Positions 24,874-38,918 of a stretch of 64,000 bases of DNA are shown piece by piece. The position numbers were made by a program, and so were the translations under genes. The DNA comes from Oikopleura dioica. Lineage: Eukaryota; Animalia; Chordata. A model generated the notes under the pieces. That model made no database searches, had not been told where the DNA came from, and saw only the letters and a list, made by a program, of their open reading frames with translations. How positions within the stretch are numbered: position 1 is the stretch's first letter; every line of letters starts with the position of its first letter. The stretch is taken from NCBI GenBank assembly GCA_907165135.1, contig OU015568.1, positions 6,634,001 through 6,698,000 on the forward strand, given 5' to 3'.

Positions 24874-27800
24874 TTAGACCGGGCAAGTTAGGGAGTAAAA
24901 GTTTCCGCGAATATTCAGTTGATCGTTGGCTTCTGGTTCCCAAGAAACTGGCTCGTCGTTCATGTAGAAGTCTGTCAGACAGCCGGAGAGACGCTTGAAG
25001 CTGACGCTGCCGTCGAGAACGGTCATGTGATCGCGAAGAGTTTGTTTCTTTGTGGAATCGTTGACCTTGAGAATCACCTGCTCGTCACTGCCTTCGTTCT
25101 TGAATTCGACTGAAAAGAGCGGTTATTCGCTGAAAGATGGAAGAGAAAACTCACCTGAAATTTCAATAGGTTGAGATCTGCAGTCTTTGTTTCTTACAGA
25201 AACGCGAGCTACACCCTTAGCGATGTAAATGTAAGCGACGACTTCTTCTTTTTCGACTTTGATTTCCATTCGCTCATCTTAATTGATTTCAGCTAGATTT
25301 GGGCAATTTAAATTTTGTTTTACCTTTTTCAGTGTTGAAAATTTCTACAAGCTCGAATTTCTCGTCTGTGGGAGTGAGCGTGACTTCGAATTTTTCAAGA
25401 CGTTCTTTGAGAGAAAAATCAATGGCGGTTCCTCGAGGAGAGAAGAAACCAACATCGCCGGGTCGAGAAAGAATGGCGGGAGAGTTCTGGATTCGCTTTG
25501 GATTCATTTCTCGATCGTTCATCTTTACATCGAAGACTGCTCCGCTGAAGCCCTCGACATTGTCCATGGTGGAAGGGCATTTGAGAGGAGTTTCACCGAT
25601 GAAGAGAGTGCTCAATGATTTCTTGGCAATTCGCAATCGCTTGTTTTCGGAATATCTGTCGAAACTCAAGATGAACTTGGTTTTTCCGCGGCTCATTTCT
25701 CTCGCTTCGATTCTGATCTGCACGCGCTTGTTGACTGGCAAGTTCTTCTTGAGATCCACTGTGTCTATCTCTTTCTGCCCGTCGGAGATGTACAAGCTTG
25801 GCTGCTGATTGACAACGACCAGGGAAACGTAAGCACTGCAGTCGTCATTTGTCAATTTGGCGATAGTTCCGTCTTTCTCTTCAATTTCAACGTCGAGATC
25901 GAGTTCGAACCGGTTGATCTTTTCGCCGTTGCGGAGGTTGAATTTCAAGAAGCTATCTGGTTTCAGCATGAATTTCTCAACTTCTGGGATTCGTTGATCA
26001 AAATGCTCGCACTTCTCGTGGTGGACCTTTCTCGAGCGCTGGTGTTCCCGAGAGCTGGCAGAATCGACCGACATCTCGACGACATGAGTGGACATCAAGC
26101 TTTGAGGAACATTCGCGTGGCATTCGTTGAAGCGCAATTGCCCCTGGCAGATGTTTCTGGTCCTGTCGTGGCAGAGGAAGCCGTCAAGAGCAGTTGCCAG
26201 GAAGACGTTCTTCTCATCCCGGAGATTTTCGATGAAAGGAACTGTCATGCAGCCGAAGAACGGTTGCTGGACGCGCTGGTTTTTCACATTTCGACCGCCG
26301 AGAGTCAGCTCGATGCTTTCATTCTCCACTTCTGCCAGTTCAAGTGCTTCGAATTTTTCTTCGTGGCCGTTGATGGAAACGAACAATCCCTCGCCATTTT
26401 TGCGTTCGATGGAGACAGCGATGTTCTCTTCCGCGACGACACGAACTGGGACGGAGAAGGTTTCTTCTTCTTTGTTAGTTTTGATGAAGAAGTTGGTTTG
26501 ATCGCCGTTTGGTGTGATGCCGAACTCAACGAATCGCTGGCCGTTTGGATTGTGAGCGCGGAGAAGGACGGAGTTTCGGAGATTGTAACCAGCTAAACAA
26601 GTGATTGATAAAGGTTTTGAGGATTTTTCTCTGAATTACCTTGGATAGTGAAACTGAAGACGGCTCTGAAATTGCTCAAAGTTCCCTTCAAGTTCTTTCG
26701 AATAATCGCTTCGTTTCCGTTGAATGAGACTTTCTGGAGATTAGGGGTTTTGCACCCAGGCAAGATTCCTGATTTCATGACAGAAGAACCAGGAGCGAGA
26801 TCCAAAGGCTTGTGATTGATAGCTGTTTTGCCGAAGCAACCGGTGTATCGCTTGTTGTACATTGGAACGTATTCTGACAGATGGCTCAAATCGCCGTAGA
26901 TTGGTTGGAAACCACCGAGATGAATTTGGTTGGAGATTCGGAACTCGCAGCCGTGGCAAGTCTTGCTCTTCTTTTTGATGTAGAAATCGTTTTCAACAGA
27001 GACGACTTTGTTTACGTTCCATTCTTTTACCGACAATCCAGCGACGCCACCAACCATGCCGATTCGAAGAGTGAGCTCGTTTGACTCTCGTTGGATTCTT
27101 GTCACGTGCTCTGGCTTCATTCCGAATGCGGTAGGGATGTAAGGATCGTTCGTCTTTGGTCGCTCAAGTCGGACTGCATTTGGTCCTGCTTTGTAACCAA
27201 GATTGTATGAGAAGACAGGCTCGCCATTTTGCAGTTCAAGGGCGAGGAAGTAATCTTTTTGAAGTGGATCGCCGATGAAGAAGATCAGCGCATCAGCTTG
27301 GGTAGTCGCTCGAAGCTTCATCTGGAAAACGATAGTTCCGGAGTCCTGGTTGACCATGTATTTTGAGTGCGATTCATCATCGAGATGAGCCCATGAATTC
27401 TCACCGGAGAACTGGTAGCAACCGGCTGTTTCCTTGATCGGCGAAGTTTCTAGAATCTGTTCCCAGTTGAGATGCTGCTGTTCTCGGCTGAAATCCTCAG
27501 CTGCCTCGTCGAAATTCCAAACAAAGATTTCGCGACCGTTGAGGACGACTTCTGCGAGTTCCATTTTCGTCGAAGTACTCTTGACACCATCAAGTGATTC
27601 GGGGAGAGCACCAAGAATCAAGGTAGTTTTATTGGAAACAAAGGTATTTTCTTGCGTTGGGAAGGTTGCGAAAACTTCAGAAGATCTCGATGAATCATCA
27701 AGCTTGGAGACATGGAGGACTAACTGATCGACGGATCGTCGAACTCGGATTTTCTGCCAGGTGCTGTCGGGTCGGAAAACTTCAGTGTCTGATTTCAAAA

Positions 27801-30800
27801 TGACTGAATCGGCATCAGCGGTGTTCTTGAAGACGACTCGGGGCTTTCCTTCCAAAATTTCAAGAGTCAAGAAGCTGGAATCGGACTCGAACAGAGTGAA
27901 AACATGAGCAGATGGCTTACGAGGCCGAACAAGGATTTCAAGATTGACTTCGTCGACAAGCTCAACGGGGAATTTGACCTCAGAGATGTCGTAGATTGTA
28001 TATTCATCGTCCTTGATCTGGAGAGGAATCTTGTTGGAGATGTAGTTTACGAGAGTCTTTGACATTTCAATTTGCTCCATGATCTCGTCAATGCTCTTTT
28101 GCATTTCTGCAAACATATCATCAGTATCCTTGGCGATCTCGTTGATTTCATTATTAATCTCAGCGAAGTTGTCTTCGTTGACACCGGTGGCGATTTCGAC
28201 AACCTTGTCGCCGCACGATTTCATGATGTTTTCGGTTTCTTCAAGCATCTGCGTTGCTTCTTCAGTGTATTTCGAAATGTGATCGTACGAAGTTTTGACT
28301 TTTTCAAGATTATCGTTGATTTCTTTGCCGGTCTTGAAGATGTCATCGACTGGAACTGTTTTATTTATCTCGTTGAAGATGTCCAAGTTGTCAATTAGAG
28401 TTTGATAGGCTTCCATATCAACAGGTTCGTTGTAGATTTCATCTAGTTTCGCAAACTGAGCATCAAGAGGGTCTTTTTCTTTGATGAGGAGATTCAGATG
28501 GTTCTGAGTTTCATCAAGTTTCTTGTCAGTTGCGTAGAGAGATTCAAGCACTCCGCTGCAGGTAGATTCAGCTTCTGATTTTTCAGTAATTGATGGAAGT
28601 CGCCCATCAATACCATCGAGCAATTCCTGGGCAGACTCAATTTCGGCGAAAGAATTTTTGATAACTTGGTCAATATTTTGAGCACGCAACACTTCAATTT
28701 GCTTGTCAAGTCCAGGAGAGACTTTAGTGAAGAAAATCTCATAATCGCGGTGAATTTGCTCAATCTTGGCAGCGTGTTTTCCAGCGTCGGCAACCCAGTC
28801 TCGCTCTTCTTCTCCAATCTGCTCGATGACCGCTTTCGATTTTTCCATTCGCTCTTCGATTTGTTCGAGTCCTGAAATGATGGTCGCATCATTGTTGAGT
28901 CGGTAGATGGAATTTTCGAATTGAGCCAATGGATCTTCACCAGATAGGGTAGAGTAATCATGGCGAGTTCCATTGTTCATGATGTTTGCGTCATTGAGTA
29001 TTTTGGACGTTTCATAGTAGCTGGCTTTGTAGTCGTTGGCGTCCGAGTGAATCTGCATGATCGTCTTGTTGTTGATTTCAGTCAAATCCATGACATAAGA
29101 AAGATCTTCAGTGATTTGATCGAGAGTTTCTTTGAACTGATCGAGTTTGGCTTTCTTTTCCTCGATTTCTTCAATCAGAAGACCTCCTCGGGAAGAAAGC
29201 TTAGTGACATTGTATCGTCGATTAACATCTTCCAATGTCTCTGTCGCTAGAATTTGCTCCTCAACTGTGGCTTCGTTGTTTTCGAGACGCAAAACTTCGT
29301 GATAATGGATGTTTGTGATGTTGAAAATAATCTCTTGGGCAGTTGGAACCCAGACATTGTCGAATTCATCGAAGTCAATTTGCTTCTTTCTCGCGATTTC
29401 CATAGCTCGGAAGCTCAATTCATCCAAATCTGTCGAAAGAACGGTCGACTCCTCGAATCTATGCTTGGACTCATCAGTCGATAGTTTTGTTCTGACTTCG
29501 TATTCATGAACGTCGTGGCAAGTTCCGATCATTGAGTTGTACATCTTTTCGAATTCGCGAACCTGATCGCCCGAGGAGTAGCCCATGAGATTTCGTTCCA
29601 ACGAGTTCACATGATTTTTGAGTCCCTTGAGCTCCTTGTCCATGATATTTAGTTTCCGATAAGCAAGGCCACCAGCTTTTGTGACTTCCAGATCAGTCAG
29701 GCGAATCGACACTTCAGTAGTGTACATATCGAGAGATTTTTCATCGTATCCGAGGAATTCATCCCAGTCTCCTTCTGTTCGAGGACCGAGAAGCCAGTCA
29801 ATGCAAGATGAGCACGGTTCGCATTTGGTGTTTAGTCCTGATAGACGAGTAACTGCTCGTGGGTTTTCGCATTGATCGCATTGCGCGCCAATTACTCCTG
29901 GAGGGCACTCGCATCGGCCGGTCTGAGAGTCACATGGAAGACCAGGTGGACAATTGCACTGCTTGCAGCCGGAAGAAGTCAGATCATAGTGACCTTCTTG
30001 GCATTTGTCGCAGTTGAGTCCTTCAACACCAGGCTTGCAAGTGCACTGTCCAGTGAGTTTGTCGCAAACATCAGATGTAGAACCGTTCTTGTCACAAGCG
30101 CAAGTTTTGCATCCAGTCATGTGACAGCTATCAAAGTCCCAGAAGCCATCAGCACATTGATCACATGTCTCGCCAACGACGTTTGGTTTGCACTGACAGT
30201 CGCCGAAGATGTTGTCACATCCTTGAGAGCCGCAGATGTTGCAGTTGCACTCCTCGCAAGACTTTTCAATCGCGTTTCCAAAATAGAAAGGAGCGCATTT
30301 TTCACAGTGTTTTCCTGCAGTGTTGTTGATGCAAGCGAGACAAGTTCCATCTTGATCATCGCACTGAACGTTGCCGGTGGAAAGGTCAGAGTTGCCATTG
30401 CAATCGCACTTTTTGCACTCTTGGTTGATCATATTTGGGCGACCGAACCAACCAGCATCGCATTTTTCACAGGCAGCGCCGGTGTATCCTGGCTTGCAGT
30501 TGCAAACAACGTCGAAATCATCCTTTTTATCAGGGTTGAAGATGTTTGTAAAGTCCGTGAACTCAGAGTAGTCGGCAATCTTTTCATCCTTGACTTGGTG
30601 GAAGCAAGAGATGGAGTGCGAGTTGTGCTCGCTTGGGCAAGGACAGGGTTTGCAATCGGCAGAAGTTCCACCTTTGGCGTATCCAATGAATCCCTCGGCG
30701 CAGAACTCGCAGTTTGTGCCCATCGTATTGTCAAGACAGGTTGAGAGCTCAATTGTACTCTCGGCCAGTTTCATTGCCGAATCTTGAATGTAGATTTCGC

Positions 30801-33800
30801 TGCCGTCTTGTTCAACACCTTCAATGTATTGGCTAGAAACATCGCTGGTAACATTGTTCAAGAGGATGAAAGTTTGCTCGCCAAGGAGAGACGAGGTATC
30901 CCAGTATCGAGGGTAGCCGTCTTCGTCGCATTCATCGCAGTGGTTGTTGCATTTGCATTTCTGGCAGCGCTGGTATCGAGAACCTTCAGTATTTGACTTA
31001 TCCCAGTAGTAGCCTTTATCACACTCCTCGCAACTCGGTCCCACGTGACCTTCTGGGCAAGTACAGACTTCGACGCGGGAGCGGTGAGCGTATCGAGAAG
31101 CTTCAGAAGAATCAGAATATGGCATCTCAAGTTGGTCGGTAAAGTCGGTATCTTCGAGGATCAGATTGGAAATTTGAATTTCAGAGACGGCAACGGGATA
31201 GGAAGCTTTCATTTTGATGCCGGTCAAGTCACGAAGAACCTTGAGCAGTTCGTTTCGAGAGATAGGTTGGTGAGTGAGGGCCGAGAAGAAACCGTTTTCC
31301 ATGAGTGGAACTCGGACGGTCATTGAGTTTGAGTCGGATCGATGTTCGTCGGATTTCCAGTAGATGCTGAGTCCATTACCGTCAAGATAGAGATCTGGAT
31401 CAGTGTTGAGCGACGAGAAAGCGCTGTTTGCAGCCTTGTCGTGCTCTTCTTCGTCCCAGGTGATTGTGTACTCAAGGAATCCACCGTAAGCGCCAAGTCT
31501 GTTACCGCCGTATTTCTTCACAGGAGCGACCCAGTAAAGAGGCTTTCGAGCTTGAGAGTCGGATCGAAGAGCTTGGCCACCTGCTTTATTGACTTCCAAG
31601 GTGATGGAGTTTTCAAAGGCAAAGAGGGCTTTTTCGTAGTTAGGCGAGATCATTCCTTGAACACGCCAGTCTTCAGCTGTAGACATGTCAGAAACGGAGA
31701 GAACAGCAAAGTCGGATGGTCGACAATCAGCATGACCGGTCTCGAGTTGGATTAAACCGGAGCAGTAGCAGGAAATGCAGCCAGCTGGATTCTGAGAATC
31801 GAGGAAGAAGGAACCGGCTTTGCAGCGAGAGCAGCTGGTGCCTTCGACGTTTTCTTTGCACTGGCAAGCTCCTGTTTTGACATCGCACTGGTTATTGTCC
31901 CCGATGGTACCGCGCTCATCGCACTCGCATTTTTTACAGTTGGGGAATCCGTAGTAACCAGGGAGACATCGATCACAGCTTTTACCAGTGATGAAGGGTA
32001 GGCAAGCGCATTGACCGTTGTGGTCGTCGCAGCTTTCAGAAGCGCCGATGGTTCCTTCAGCGTTGCAGTTGCAAAGCTTGCATCCTGTGATATGATGGTA
32101 TCCGTAAGCATCATCCTGGCAGCTAAGGCAATCTTCAGATGTATTTGCTGGGCAGAGACATTCGCCAGTGCTCTCGTCGCAGACCGTGTTTCCGACACAA
32201 TTGCATTTTCTGCAATTTGGCCAGTTGTAGTAACCAACCTCGCATCTTGAGCAATCGCGTCCGATGACATTTGGCTTGCATTCGCATTGACCGCCGTAGG
32301 CTTCGCACTTTTCGCTGTATCCAACTGTTCCGGCAGTGGCACACTGACACTGCTTTGGATTCGAGTTCGACATGACGAGGGTCAAAGCGTTGTCTTTGCA
32401 CATTTTTGGAATATCGTCGTCACGTGGGTCGATCAAGAAGCCGCAGTTTTTAATAAACCAGTCGGCGTGGTTGAGTTCGGCGAGATCAAGTTGTTCAATT
32501 GACCATTTTGTCTCCGGGATGACGATGAAGTTCTTGATTCTGAGAGGTGAGTTTTCTTCGAAATCGATTGAAAGAGTGATTGCTTGTTCTGTGAAAGGGA
32601 AGACCTTATCGCCATTTTGGAGATAAATAATCGCTCGGCAGCCAGATGTCAATTGGCAGTATTCAATTCGGACGGTGCCATGGAAAGACTCAACAGCAGA
32701 TTCGATGAAAATGGATGTGTTGTAGCTCAGACTCTCTTCGTTGTAGTAGTGGATGACAACGAGACTTGGCTCCTCTGCGTGAAGTTCAGTGGAGACATGA
32801 ACCTTGGTTCCATTCTCTGGAGGCACGAACCAAAGACTGTCTGACAGACGAATTTCAGTAGCAGCAGCTGGAGTGGATGGATAGACAGATTCATCAGGGT
32901 TGATAAACTTAGGGCCGTGGCTAGAAATTCCTAGTTTCTTTGGCTGAACAACTTCGATGGACCAATCTTCAAACGGAATGACATGGATTCTCCTGATAAA
33001 GAGCATTTGATCGTCTCGGATTCTTCCTTCGTGGCTGATGGAAAGATAGATCGGACCGGCATCCATATCAATCACTGAAACTTCTCGGTTGAGAGTCACG
33101 CCAACTTGTCGGCAAGAGAAGAGATAGTTGCAAGCATAGGCATTGTAATATCCGGGCTCGACGCGCTCGATTCCGTGTTTTCTGTAGGTGACGTCGATTC
33201 GCACTTGTTGGATTCGCTCAACTCTGTTGACGTAGTCCATCACGAGGACGTACTTGCCTTTTGTTTGAATGTCGATCTGAGCGTAGAGGTTTTCCGCTTT
33301 GGTTCCGTCCAACATGAGCATCTTTTCAAAAGGCTGTGTTCGTCCAGCAACAGTATTGTAGACCATGGGAGGGATGATTTCAAAGTCGCCGGCGAGTGGA
33401 AGTCGGAAAGTTGAGTATTCGCGGACAACAGTTCCGATCGGAAGGGGGAAGTGATCATACATCATGCATTTTGACCCCTTGGATTCAGAGAATTTGCATG
33501 GCTCGTCAACTTTTTGCTTGAGAATTCGCGGCTCATAGTAATCTGCTGGAAGAAGAGCGATGTAGTCAACCAAGACACCTTCTTTTTTGAACTCGGCTCC
33601 TTCAGTGTCGATTTCAAGTCGGAACTTGTACTCGCCTTCAGAAAGAACAGCATCAGTGTTGAAGGAAACGGTAGACGGCTCTGCTGATTGAGGAAGCTTG
33701 ATCTCGACGATTTGTGGAGCTTTGCCTAAAAAGAACGGTAAGTCAATTGTTTATTGAGAAAGGAAATGGGTTTGCTTGTTCAAAAAACTTCGATTTCCCG

Positions 33801-36800
33801 GTGAAAAACAAAAACGAACTTGAACATGTTTTTTCCTCTGACTCGATGTTTCGTCTTTTTCTACTGTTCTCAGAAGAAGAGTCGTCAAAAGTTATCGCAT
33901 CCCTAGAAGAACTAGGAATGAAATCAACCATTATTGGTTTCTCGTCAATAATTTCTTCATTGGCAAAGGAAGCGCATCCAGAGTAGCAATCCTGCTCCTC
34001 AGCTCGCAAAAGATGCTTTCGACCATTTATAATTGTCGTTGGACACCCTGATCACGGTTTTTGATTCTGATAAAAATACAATAGACTATGAAATGGTTAA
34101 AACCGAAACAGAGTAGCTAGAAGATAAACAAGTAAATTTTCTAGTTCGTTTTCCTCCGTCAATAGAACATTCGCACGCTGTCCATTCTGACCAACCCTGA
34201 ATCTTTTGTTCTTGAGTGGTTTCGATTTTTTGTGTAGTCGTAGATGTCGAAGAAGATTCTGTTGTTCTTCTTGTCGTGGTAGTTGTTGGAGGTAAATTTG
34301 AGCCTGGAGAAGGCCAAATAAGATCAGCACTGAAGGATGAGTCAACTGATTCTGGAAGAGGCCACACAGGGTCTATTGAAGACTCTGTTGTTGTCGTTGT
34401 TGTTGTGGTAGTTGTTGGAGGTAAATCAGAGCCCGGACGAGGCCAGATAGGATCAATACTGAGAGACGGGTCAACGGATTCCGGAAGAGGCCAAACAGGG
34501 TCTATCGAATTATCAGACGGTACTGTTGTTGTGGCTTTTGTTGAGCTTGCTGCTTCGCTAGTTGCTCGTGGAGGCGGGAAAACAGTGGCGATATTTTCTC
34601 CGGTGATAGGTTGGGGCCAAATTGTTGAAGATTCTGTCGCTTCTGGTTGTTCTGTTGTTGTCGTTGTGGATTGTTTTGTAGAAGTCGTTGTTGTAGTCGT
34701 AGTGGTAGATGTTGATGTAGTCGTAGATGTTGATTTAGTTGTAGATGTGGTCGAAGTTGTCGAGGTTGAAGTTGTGGTTTCCACCTTCTGATGAGCTGTA
34801 GAAATCATCCTCTCAGAAGTCATTCCTTCTTCTGGCATTGAAGTGGAGGACTGATAACCTGGTGGTTTCGGCCAAATGGATTGATGAGCTTGAGTTACGA
34901 TCGGCTCCCAAGTTTGAGTTGTGATCTCTGCAGCAATAGTTTTTGCCGTCAAAGTTGTAGATCTTGTAGTCGATATTCTTGTTGTGATAGTGATTTGTTG
35001 CTTTTGTGTGGTAGTTGTTGAAATTACGGGTTTCGATGTCAGATGAGGATCATAATCAGAAAACTGCTCAAAATATGGATGGCTGTCTGATCTAGGCGGA
35101 ACATTTGAAGAAAAACTACTTTCCTCAATGATTGGATCATTTTTATGAAAAAATTCTCGAGTCACTCTTTCCTCCTCCTCTTCTTCTTCAATACAGTCAG
35201 TCCCGATCTTTGTCATGATCAGCCTCCCTGTTAGCGTAGAATTTTCAGTATTTCGATAATGAAGCATAATTTTGAACAAGCTCTCCCCTTTCAATTCGAC
35301 CTTTCCACCAAAGCCCACATAATTCTAAAAAACTTACATTTAACGACGAGATCATCAGATTCAACGCACGCCAAATCGGAAATGTTCAATCGCGCGGTGA
35401 TGAGTTTCGTGGTCGGATTCACGAACCGGATGAGAACTTTGTACAGTGGAATCGCGTTGGGAAGAGGTTTCTCTATTTCCCCGTGGGTTACCACTGCTGG
35501 CTGGGTTAAGGAAATTTGTTAGATTTTCTGGTTAGTGAGTTTTTAAGGTACCTGAATGTCTGAGAGCTCAGCATAGCCTCGGAGAGAAAAGTCTGGGAAG
35601 AGAGCTTTATCGACTCCGTATCGAACATGTTCTCCAGAATCGAGATATCCATCCTCAGCCTCGAATTTGTACTTGTACAATGTTGGGAAATACCAGCCAG
35701 ATTCGACATCGTCACATCTTCGACCTTTCACGTGATCTTTGCAAGTACATTGGCCATCGTTGGCTTCGCATTGAGCGAGAGCTCCTCCTTGAGTTCCGCC
35801 AACATCGCAAGAGCAAGGAACGCAGCCGAAGTAGTCCTTTTCTTCCAATCCATAGAATCCATCGAGACATTTGGAACATTTTCTGGTGCAGACATGATTT
35901 TTGCAGTTGCACTGTCCGTCTGAGGAAGCGCAGTCTTTTATTTCGTTGAGCAAACCAGCCCGGAAACAACCGCATTCTTCGCAGCCGTCTGGATTGCTTC
36001 CTTGCAGATTCCAGTGTTTGTTCAAGCACTGCTCGCAGTACATGCCCCCAGTAGCTCTCTTGCAAGTGCAGCTTCCAGTTTCGAAGAAAGAGCAATAGGC
36101 CTTGTCAGGGTTGGCGATTCCATCAGGATGGCAAGGGCAGCTTTTGCACTCCGGAAAGTTGAAGAAGCCCAGCGCGCAAGAGTTGCAAGTTCGCCCAGTT
36201 GTTTGAGGAAGGCCGAGAGAAGCTGTTTCTTGCGATGTTCGGCACTGGCATTGTCCGGTAACCTTGTCACAATAGGCCGATTCTGCGCCATTGAGATCGC
36301 ACTCGCAGGCTTTACAAAAGCCACTCTCGTCCATGTAGTAGTTGTCAGCGCACTGGTCGCACCTGACACCCGAGTATTCTTCTTTGCAAACACATTGGCC
36401 GGTGTAAATATCGCAGGGCTCGTTCTTAACGCTACCGATCTCTGAGCAGGTGCACTCGCCACAGTCCGGGAAGGTGTGGTACCCGGCGCGGCATTTTTCG
36501 CACTTGGCTCCGTCAAATCGCTCGTCGCAGAAACAGGAGAGGGTGGAAAGAGTGGAATTGCAAAACTCTTCAGTTGTTCCGTACTTTGAGCAGAGGCATC
36601 GATCGCAAGCGGGGTAGTTGTGATATTGTGTAGCACATTGCTCACAGCTATCACCATCAAAAGCTGGTTTGCAGACGCAGGCGCCAGTTTCCTTGTCGCA
36701 CGGGGCTGTTTTCACTGCTCCAGGCTGCTGTGCGCACTCGCAGGGAACGCACTCGGGGAAGTTGAAGAAGCCGTCGGCGCATTGGTCGCACATTGGACCA

Positions 36801-38918
36801 GTGTAGTTTTCCTTGCACTCGCAGATTCCAGTTTCTTCATCTGGTCGGCATTGTCCGGAAGCTTCTTCAGTCGATTTGGTTCCCGCGTAAAAGCATGGGC
36901 AAGGATTGCACTCAGGAAAGTCCATGAATCCTTCGGCACAAGAGTTGCACAAATGGCCAGCGTATTTCTCCTTGCACTTGCAGGCGCCCGTGTCGTGATC
37001 GCAAGTAGTGTCGGTGTAGTTGCTTGGGCAGTCGCACTCGAGACAGGCGTTCTCGTCTATGATTTCAGCAGCTGGATTTCTGTAAAATCCATTTTCGCAC
37101 CGTTCGCAGTTGATGCCAGTAGTGTGGTGTTTGCAGTCAACGCAGACTCCGCCACCTTCATAGATGCCATCGATGTTCATGGAGCGGCCTTCGCGCTCGA
37201 CGTTTTCGTCATAGTAGCACGCATCAGCGTGTTGATGACAGTTGCACGCGACACACTCGTTTTCGTGGTCGCGCTCGGCGTGTTTCCATTTCCGCTGGTT
37301 AAAGAGCGGCATGCATTCCTAGTTTCATGGGCTCCAAAAATGTACAATTTCAAACATATTGTACGTAATAAGAGGAAGTTCAGAAGTTCCACTACCGAAT
37401 TCCTAATTAACTATTTCGTCATGACAAGTTCAGCTATTTTTGGATCCCTTTCCTGGCAGGAAATTCCAGCAGTGTTGTGCTTGCAGTTGCATCGAAGCTT
37501 GTAGTCGCCAGAGTTCTTGTCCGCTGAGCACTCGTCCGCGTGACCGTTGCAGTCGCATCTGCCGCCGATGGAGATATCCTTGATCGAGTAAAAATATCGT
37601 CGCGTAACTGACTCGTCGTTTTCCATGATTCCCATCAAATGGCCAAGAAGAGTTTTCGCCAGCTCAAATCGAAGTCGAATCTTGCGAGCTTTGGTCCACG
37701 CTTGAAGAGTAGGACTGGACCAGAAGTTGACAGCACCAGGTCGACCCTTGATCAGCGAGACGATGATTTCTCCATTCTCGAGCGGCGGAATTTCGGAAAA
37801 GTCAGAAGTGCATCGAACCTCGTCATCGATAGAAACCCAATCGTTGGCGCCAGTGTGTTGAATTCCAAAGTTCGGGGGACAGTCGCTGCCGTGGTTGGCG
37901 AAGTATTGCCAGGGATGGAAGTTTTCTCCGTCCAGCGATCGTTCCAAAACCCATCGGCCAGCGCGAGGAGAGTTGGCAAACTTGATCACAATGTAGGCAA
38001 CATGAAAGACCTAAAAACAGTTGAACTTTTTGTATTCCAAAAGAGAGCGAAAAAGACATTTCGCACCCGCAAAAGATGAATTACGCTTCCCTTGATTGAT
38101 CTCCCACGAGCTAATCATCCCCCTTTTACGACGAGTTTACCCCATAGTCACGTCACCAATAAACCCATAATTAAAAGGACCCATAAATAGGTTGAAAGGG
38201 CGCTTAGAGTGCTGAATTTCCATTCTTCCCTTTTCCGCAACAATAACAATCGGCCCCTTATTCGAGGCTTTGTTCGTCAATAGAGCGGGTTTACTCGAGT
38301 CCCATTGAAAATTTGCACAGTTGTTATTGTTTTTCATCCCTTTTTAGGTTTTCCTGGGCAAATTTGTCTTACAAAGGATTGCTCAAAAAGCTGGTTTCTG
38401 AGACAAAACTGTCAATTTACTTTTGAAAGTTCGAAAATTCCACTCAAAAAGTTGACTCAAATTTATTACCTGTCCAAGATCGATGGTGACATTGACCTTG
38501 TTGAAATCCTTGTCCAGGGTATTCGAGCTGAGGGGAGGACTTTGCCACCAGTTCTCAGTTCCATCGATGGCATTCTCGATCGGATGAGCTCGGGCAGGAT
38601 TGGTATCGTCGCAGAGGTCACAGAATTGACCACCGGTGCCAGTTCCCAAGTAGCGGATGAGGGCCTCGTCGGGATCTTGAAGATAGTCGGAGCCGGCGGA
38701 GAGTTTACAAAACACTTCCGGTTTGAGAGTGCCGCATGTCGCAGTTGCTTCGATCTTCTTCCCCGTCGCCAAGTTGAAGTACTTTGGGGCGAGGACGCCG
38801 TAGTCTTCAACTTTCGTCTCTTTTGCCTGAAGAAATTTTTAATCGAGGAAAATCTTATCAAAAATCTTACCTGACTAGCAAAAGGGCCAAAAGCTGCTAG
38901 AAGCAATAATAAACCCAT
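24874..38918 (-). CDS. LAMA5: Laminin alpha chain, alpha3/5 class (LN-LE-L4a-LE-L4b-LE-coiled coil-LG1-5)
   Basis: Signal exon MGLLLLLAAFGPFASQ; LN domain YFNLATGKKIEATATCG...NAIDGTENWWQSPPLS...IKFANSPR; many LE repeats; heptad region; LG domains ending FYSLTCPV*. Confidence 0.93.
33826..35324 (-). CDS. Laminin alternative exon block B (homologous L4a segment + mucin + TSP1-like repeat + RKRR)
   Basis: Phase-0 acceptor ttttag|AAT. Reads NYVGFGGKVELKGESLFKIMLHYRNTENSTLTGRLIMTKIGTDC, then S/T/P-rich tract and WSEWTACEC...RTR. After a probable intron at 34048-34117 it continues to RKRRNIESEEKT with phase-1 donor T|gttcaa. Confidence 0.7.
35338..35500 (-). CDS. Laminin alternative exon A (short L4a segment)
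   Basis: Phase-0 acceptor cccag|CCA and phase-1 donor AAAT|gtaag. Encodes PAVVTHGEIEKPLPNAIPLYKVLIRFVNPTTKLITARLNISDLACVESDDLVVK(C). Confidence 0.8.

Follow-up and report, generated by a model that had tools for sequence, protein, structure and literature searches.

The minus strand of the window analyzed here, a 64-kb stretch (64,000 nucleotides, nt) of contig OU015568.1 from Oikopleura dioica, contains a laminin alpha gene, and we found that the L4a region of this gene is probably built in two mutually exclusive ways. A common short form is made through one exon, A, and a rare long form would be made through two other exons, B and B2. The short route (path A) was proven by a spliced contig: the donor at 35551 leads to exon A, the donor at 35337 is used next, 1612 nt are removed, and the shared exon is entered at 33725. 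The layout of the two routes is supported as a homologous alternative-exon pair, in which a donor and an acceptor lie 13 nt apart. B very likely arose by tandem duplication of A, the second copy having grown into a conserved, coding, and rarely used alternative module.

The laminin alpha gene and its two proposed routes through L4a

The gene was identified by its Pfam matches. Laminin_N was matched with an E-value of 2e-34 in the open reading frames (ORFs) 37414-37989 and 38386-38772, and EGF_laminin was matched in ten stretches within 35552-37312 (E 3.6e-72). The 2326-codon ORF 26593-33573 and its surroundings contained EGF_laminin again (second match, E 2.7e-61), Laminin_B (8.5e-23), and Laminin_G_1 and Laminin_G_2 (1e-14 to 1e-15). 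LN, LE repeats, L4, and C-terminal LG domains, which define a laminin alpha chain, were thereby all found in one gene. The domain order is that of laminin alpha3/alpha5-type chains (LN, LEa, L4a, LEb, L4b, LEc, coiled coil, LG1-5), appearing here as Laminin_N, many EGF_laminin, Laminin_B, and Laminin_G. A protein search with residues 1-400 of a 2376-residue laminin reference found nothing among proteins of 1300-4150 residues. The introns are very short, which fits O. dioica as the source. The site of A and B follows the first block of LE repeats and precedes the remainder of the L4a domain; its elements are listed below in the order of transcription. X5 is an RNA-like data set, X1 is a marine metatranscriptome, and L001 and L003 are related sequences described below.

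35552..37312, minus strand: upstream laminin exon with LE repeats and the start of L4a (Pfam EGF_laminin; joint 35552/35500 in X5 and X1 contigs)
35501..35551, minus strand: 51-nt intron before A, also the first part of a 227-nt intron for path B (51-base skip joint in X5, depth 267, and in X1)
35338..35500, minus strand: exon A, 163 nt, 54 codons plus a phase-1 T, major form (X5 record 17; translation)
35325..35337, minus strand: 13-nt spacer gtaagttttttag (sequence; donor used in X5; ORF B starts at the first base past the AG)
34130..35324, minus strand: predicted exon B, 1195 nt, 398 codons plus a phase-1 T (open frame; L001 comparison; X5 cover 34132-34959)
34048..34129, minus strand: predicted B-to-B2 intron, 82 nt (only frame-keeping donor/acceptor pair common to the window and L003)
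33826..34047, minus strand: predicted exon B2, 222 nt (ORF kept in L003; X5 depth 4.22 from 33827)
33726..33825, minus strand: 100-nt intron, also the 3'-terminal part of the 1612-nt path-A intron (L003 alignment; empty in X5)
26596..33725, minus strand: shared downstream exon (Pfam Laminin_B, EGF_laminin, Laminin_G_1, and Laminin_G_2; joint 35337/33724 in X5)

The upstream exon ends in ...AELSDIQ at 35552 and is followed by a phase-0 donor GT at 35551-35550. Exon A encodes PAVVTHGEIEKPLPNAIPLYKVLIRFVNPTTKLITARLNISDLACVESDDLVVK plus a phase-1 T, after which GTAAGT follows. As shown by X5 record 17 (contig depth 267), the segments 36094..35552, 35500..35337, and 33724..33479 are joined, with joints skipping 51 and 1612 bases, and no X5 cover was found inside the 51-nt intron. 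The joint 35500/35552 was also present in X1, whose cover was confined to the exons of path A. The shared exon begins with the GC that completes a Cys codon, followed by the rest of L4a, LE repeats, L4b, a coiled coil, and the LG domains.

In path B, the donor at 35551 would skip A and use the AG at 35325, B and B2 would be included, and B2 would be spliced to the shared acceptor. Computed translation of B, B2, and the shared exon was free of stops. Exon A and path B are both entered in phase 0, and both end in a phase-1 T (35338 and 33826, respectively), which completes TGC with the GC at 33725-33724. A and B are therefore same-strand neighbors with equal entry and exit phases. No donor of the window other than the phase-0 one at 35551 can feed B in frame.

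Within the 13 nt between A and B, the consensus donor of A is followed by a T-run and then by the AG that would serve B as acceptor, such that the two splice signals overlap. Direct joining of A to B created an immediate TAA at the joint in computed translation, retention of the 13 nt led to a stop after 15 codons, and skipping of both A and B shifted the frame. The original prediction had described this locus as a pair of mutually exclusive homologous exons, and its coordinates, frames, phases, spacer, and shared TGC all hold in the sequence, as do the frameshift on joining A to B and the stop on retention of the spacer. The median intron of O. dioica is 48-51 nt (PMC8008620), compared with 13 nt here. 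Introns under the minimum length are not excised, and several mutually exclusive pairs of C. elegans depend on that (PMC4165533); the mechanism that the original prediction had called established is thus documented. From spliceosome geometry (PMC4165533), the 13 nt would not be removable as an intron. The donor GTAAGT of A would sit within the 3' splice-site region of B, between the AG and any branch point, and the branch point for B would have to lie inside exon A. Recognition of GTAAGT and of TTTTTTAG would exclude each other, and every transcript would commit to A or B; steric exclusion of A and B by overlapping signals may accordingly be proposed from this geometry. A docking/selector-type pairing of the A/B-start region with the conserved 100-nt intron was rejected, since the duplex energy (−40.4) showed no excess over chance (shuffles −39.8±4.6).

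Homology was analyzed by local Smith-Waterman alignment with BLOSUM62. A and the start of B scored 47, compared with 18.6±3.3 for shuffled sequences, and 0 of 2000 shuffles reached 47. The start of B in L001 gave a score of 40 against A, which was reached by one shuffle in 2000; YK and TARL matched exactly. When exon A was compared with 2152 six-frame segments of the window, B was its top non-self match, with a modest margin over the next two (39 and 36). By these scores A and B are homologous, as the original prediction had claimed. The alignable parts are the lead-in (15 and 18 residues), the strand LFKIMLHYRN... against LYKVLIRFVN..., and the first Cys. BLASTP of A against B gave no alignment with these short, composition-adjusted sequences, and no Pfam family was found in A, B, or B2 when each was searched alone.

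The partners are not of similar length, and only the first ~45 codons of B match A. Path B comprises two exons of 1195 and 222 nt (472 codons), compared with 163 nt (54 codons) for A. The Cys-to-Cys spacing is nine residues in A and about 430 in B, where the loop holds an insert combining a run of acidic residues, a Thr/Ser/Pro region of mucin-like character, a WSxW module rich in Cys, and a dibasic RKRR site. With the closing Cys, the segment encoded by path B has 473 residues, of which 20% are Thr, 13.5% Ser, and 8% Pro, and it is mucin-like in composition.

Predicted exons B and B2: coding conservation and RNA cover

The ORF of B begins at 35324, immediately past the AG (NYVGFGGKVELKGESLFKIMLHYRNTENSTLTGRLIM...), and stays open for 412 codons to a TAG. 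It encodes, in order, the ~45 codons copying A up to its Cys, the acidic run, the mucin-like region, and WSEWTACECS..RTRKFT. No ATG or signal peptide at its start was conserved between the window and L001, indicating that B requires an upstream exon. A protein search with the whole of B found only P0001, a search with its region 1-100 found nothing, and when the start of B was used in an exhaustive profile search, only P0001 and three repeat proteins, which are not relatives, were returned. We observed a 129-nt (43-codon) tandem duplication in the mucin-like part at 34252-34509 (2.0 copies, 82% identity; IDPVWPLPESVD...IWP.PGS.LPPTTTT), which is single-copy in L001. In X4 and X7, which behave as DNA of haplotypes 5-7% diverged, joints skipping 99-100 nt hint at a copy-number difference in this duplication, although their sides are short.

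The donor of the predicted B-to-B2 intron is T/GT in the window and T/GC in L003 and L001, and its T is the first base of a Cys codon after RTRKFT; the acceptor is the AG at 34049-34048. The intron is 82 nt long in the window and 80 nt in L003. Non-GT/AG introns account for 11-12% in O. dioica (PMC8008620). Two other donors were rejected: for phase-0 donors at the conserved TCGGTTT, every phase-0 acceptor meets a stop, and L003 has no equivalent of a donor A/GC at 34118. In X7, gaps cluster in this predicted intron (34065-34119).

B2 encodes CPTTIINGRKHLLRAEEQDCYSGC..., a variable stretch, SRKRR, and ...EEKT with the phase-1 T. The dibasic RKRR (33847-33858), which L003 conserves (~548-559), precedes the end of B2 by 8-9 residues. 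The donor of A and the acceptor of B2 (35338 > 34047) are also phase-compatible (T+GG = Trp), so a third in-frame form with A and B2 but not B is possible. The module of B and B2, when joined across their predicted splice, reads ...RTRKFT[W/C]CP...QDCYS(G)C. Its membership in TSP1 was rejected: the Pfam family TSP1_spondin gave E 1.6 and 9.5 bits, compared with a cut-off of 41, and the L003 version gave no match. The likeness to TSP1 is a resemblance, not membership, and only the WSxW..C.C..G..R.R half resembles the repeat.

Selection on B and B2 was analyzed with related sequences. L003, a single locus from a scan of JGI metagenomes, is a 4.6-kb contig that spans the end of B, B2, the 100-nt intron, and the shared exon over 4 kb, and it lacks the 5' end of B. 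L001 and L002 are identical 1.2-kb ENA contigs covering most of B, and L001 is the sole relative showing the start of B. Over the shared exon, the proportions of differing synonymous (pS) and nonsynonymous (pN) sites between the window and L003 were 0.65 and 0.063, indicating that neutral sites are saturated. B2 showed pS 0.53 and pN 0.27 (pN/pS 0.50, dN/dS 0.35), and every gap relative to L003 was a whole number of codons (1, 4, and 1 when proteins were aligned; 3, 12, and 3 nt when nucleotides were aligned). The motifs CP.T.ING.KHLLRAE.QDCYS and SRKRR, the final EKT with its T/GT donor, and the acceptor AG/G[GC]TGTCCA were all kept in L003. Past the B2 donor, the read-through tail was not conserved, with a 4-nt indel in L003 just beyond the donor. 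Thus, the coding sequence must exit B2 by that donor, after which it continues in frame into the shared exon.

Between the window and L001, B was open for >330 codons, with pS 0.72 and pN 0.31 over 312 codons (pN/pS 0.34-0.43). The N-terminal 90 codons showed pS 0.73 and pN 0.25, and a hand count on the A-like strand, covering its first 20 codons, gave 6, 5, and 11 differences at codon positions 1, 2, and 3, respectively. Conserved islands were LHYRNTE, TARL/TGRL, KIG..C.EEE, FF..DP.IEESS, PHLTSK, QSIWPKPPGY, ATVFPPP, and QGWSEWTACECS.DGG.RTRKFTC, and the path-B segment showed large in-frame length differences. Of the within-species differences listed, 7 of 12 in B/B2 and all 28 in constitutive exons were silent (third-position in B/B2). 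These comparisons support B and B2 as coding, conserved exons.

The 100-nt intron before the shared exon was identical to L003 (579-680) in 81 of 104 aligned columns (78%), compared with synonymous sites of the flanking exon that differ at 65%. Its indels relative to L003 are 4, 1, and 1 nt, which are not multiples of three. It is strongly conserved non-coding sequence and a candidate control element for the choice between A and B. Elsewhere, L003 has a ~69-nt intron (2335-2403, GTGAGT...TTTTTTAAG) after ...HHITG, where the exon of the window (about 32080) is uninterrupted, indicating that introns come and go between lineages.

In X5, low-depth cover (2.8-7.3) was observed over B2 and over 34132-34959 of B, with 2.8-5.3 on the exon-B part. 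The depth was 0 at 33743 and 4.22 at 33829. Bin arithmetic placed the ends of the cover close to the predicted exon ends. The bin 33782-33878 had a mean of 2.26 (4.22×52/97), corresponding to cover from 33827, where B2 is predicted to end at 33826. Similarly, the bin 34073-34169 had a mean of 1.1 (2.8×38/97), corresponding to record 18 alone from 34132, where B is predicted to end at 34130. The bin 33685-33781 had a mean of 110.2 (267.3×40/97), meaning that only 40 exon bases were covered, and no cover was found in the 100-nt intron. The B-to-B2 intron was likewise empty, with depth 0 at 34065-34119 and no cover over 34073-34131 by bin arithmetic. The cover fits the predicted exon ends to within 1-2 bases and both introns are empty, a pattern not expected of contaminating DNA, lariats, or RNA before splicing. 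It would be expected of spliced B/B2 RNA present at roughly 1-2% of path A, and B is rare in that one RNA-like data set. Among transcripts, the A-only form was seen, B/B2 appeared as exon-shaped low-depth cover, and no form with A and B together was seen in the X5 contigs, where the 5' end of B is uncovered.

Competing explanations

Several observations weigh against two mutually exclusive routes. Among the joints foreseen by the original prediction, 35552>35500 and 35338>33725 were seen in X5, but 35552>35324 and 33826>33725 were not among the joints listed; nor was 34130>34047. In X5, the A-like 5' portion of B (34960-35336) was uncovered; the program had skipped a low-complexity segment in it (35164-35195), and holes in cover at such depth prove nothing either way. 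The kind of X5 was guessed as 'DNA?' by the program, and its reading as RNA rests on its spliced contig. Contig depth is also a poor measure of abundance, and contig ends may reflect graph branching. Since A and B2 are in frame, B2 possibly need not travel only with B. In L001, TGA (24-26) replaces the TAG acceptor of the window, and a 12-nt extra segment (75-86), AAAGTGAGTTAA, which is a perfect donor with an in-frame TAA, lies just ahead of the conserved strand, the TAA at a distance of five codons and with no AG between. A 42- or 48-nt in-frame intron (GTGAGT...AG) could rescue this stop, but only at the cost of the conserved LHYRNTE. The TAA could be a null allele, a recent change of that lineage, or a sign of an unseen entry into B. 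Lastly, among the gaps listed for the X7 haplotype, three fall inside B2 (33829-33887; 2, 1, and 1 nt) and would break the frame if real; X4 lacks them.

One alternative is that B and B2 are an optional insert joined together with A, for example if A's phase-1 donor were spliced in frame (T+GG) to an AG at 35229-35228, or directly to B2, which would leave the A-like start of B as a relic. The phase-1 AG at 35229-35228 in the frame of B, the in-frame join of A to B2, the uncovered 34960-35336, and the blocked start of B in L001 would all fit such an insert. However, the A-like strand of B is conserved as protein, with its excess of third-position changes and with pN 0.25 against pS 0.73 over the N-terminal 90 codons. 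The AG at 35228 has no pyrimidine run, in contrast to the TTTTTTAG at 35325, the cassette form would put a third Cys into a two-Cys loop, and no such joint was among those listed. We therefore regard an insert spliced onto A as unlikely.

It is more doubtful still that B is a decaying duplicate, whose RNA would be splicing noise or an unproductive transcript yielding no B protein. The scarcity of B in X5 (about 1-2% of A), the in-frame stop of L001, and the X7 gaps in B2 that are not multiples of three speak for decay. Against this, the frames have stayed open through saturated synonymous divergence in three lineages, with whole-codon indels and pN/pS of 0.34-0.50, the splice sites of B2 are conserved, and the 7 silent third-position differences of the 12 listed in B/B2 point the same way. 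We give the least credence to a nested gene, distinct from laminin and situated in one of its long introns, that would have a promoter or spliced-leader acceptor of its own and a secreted mucin-like product. An ORF of ~410 codons in a 1612-nt intron, which is long compared with the ~49-nt median (PMC8008620), and the low RNA cover on only part of B would suit a nested gene. Nevertheless, such a gene lacks a conserved ATG and a signal peptide, and its ORF would start exactly at an acceptor matching the phase of the upstream laminin donor. Its B2 part ends in the conserved phase-1 T/GT, its read-through tail is out of frame between the window and L003 through the 4-nt indel, and its start is homologous to a laminin exon.

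Two mutually exclusive routes through L4a are thus the explanation that we prefer. The original prediction had also concluded that one gene makes two very different alpha chains. Path A is proven and B/B2 are coding, which agrees with this in part, but B, at ~1-2% of A, is not a like-for-like partner, and its entry joint was unseen. The further suggestion that the switch replaces paralog diversity found no support; another alpha chain, Od-laminin alpha1, has been described in O. dioica (PMC3034685).

Known systems and implications

Exclusion by a sub-minimal spacer would be of an already known kind. In C. elegans, exons 5B and 5A of egl-15, an FGF receptor, are separated by a spacer of 14 nt, compared with a ~40-nt minimum, and this short intron has never been seen excised (PMC4165533). 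Similarly, exons 9 and 10 of let-2, which encodes collagen IV alpha2 and is also a basement-membrane gene, have a spacer of 30 nt and are never joined (PMC4165533). The partners in egl-15 and let-2 are of like size, whereas here 163 nt stand against 1195 + 222 nt with a ~430-residue insert, and the second partner is only putatively used. In mammalian alpha-tropomyosin, the spacing between donor and branch point of exons 2 and 3 is too short for spliceosome assembly (PMC4165533), and this steric class makes up about 9% of human clusters (PMC5740500). The alpha-tropomyosin intron is long and only its branch point is near the donor, whereas the whole interval is 13 nt here and the branch point would lie within exon A.

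What would be new is the lopsided pair in a tunicate laminin. To our knowledge, no alternative exon pair or mucin-like insert is known in the L4a of any laminin alpha. Laminin is also absent from a human catalogue of mutually exclusive exons, in that the catalogue does not mention it. As a tentative extension, which we hold with clearly less confidence than the two routes themselves, the overlap switch may make a mucin-bearing laminin short arm in a minority of cells or stages. Cleavage could then occur at the dibasic site, with the pieces held by the Cys-Cys loop, and the 100-nt intron might set the choice between A and B.

Gene models at this locus should list two isoforms. If path B is unused, a laminin gene with an unusually long intron and a conserved ORF would still need explanation. 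Should path B prove real, it would provide a clean case, in a chordate, of alternative exons made exclusive by splice signals 13 nt apart, in which a duplicated exon gained a large module (a mucin-like region, a Cys-rich module, and a dibasic site) while the main product was left undisturbed. O. dioica, a matrix-secreting animal, would then make a core basement-membrane protein with a second short arm that differs greatly from the first.

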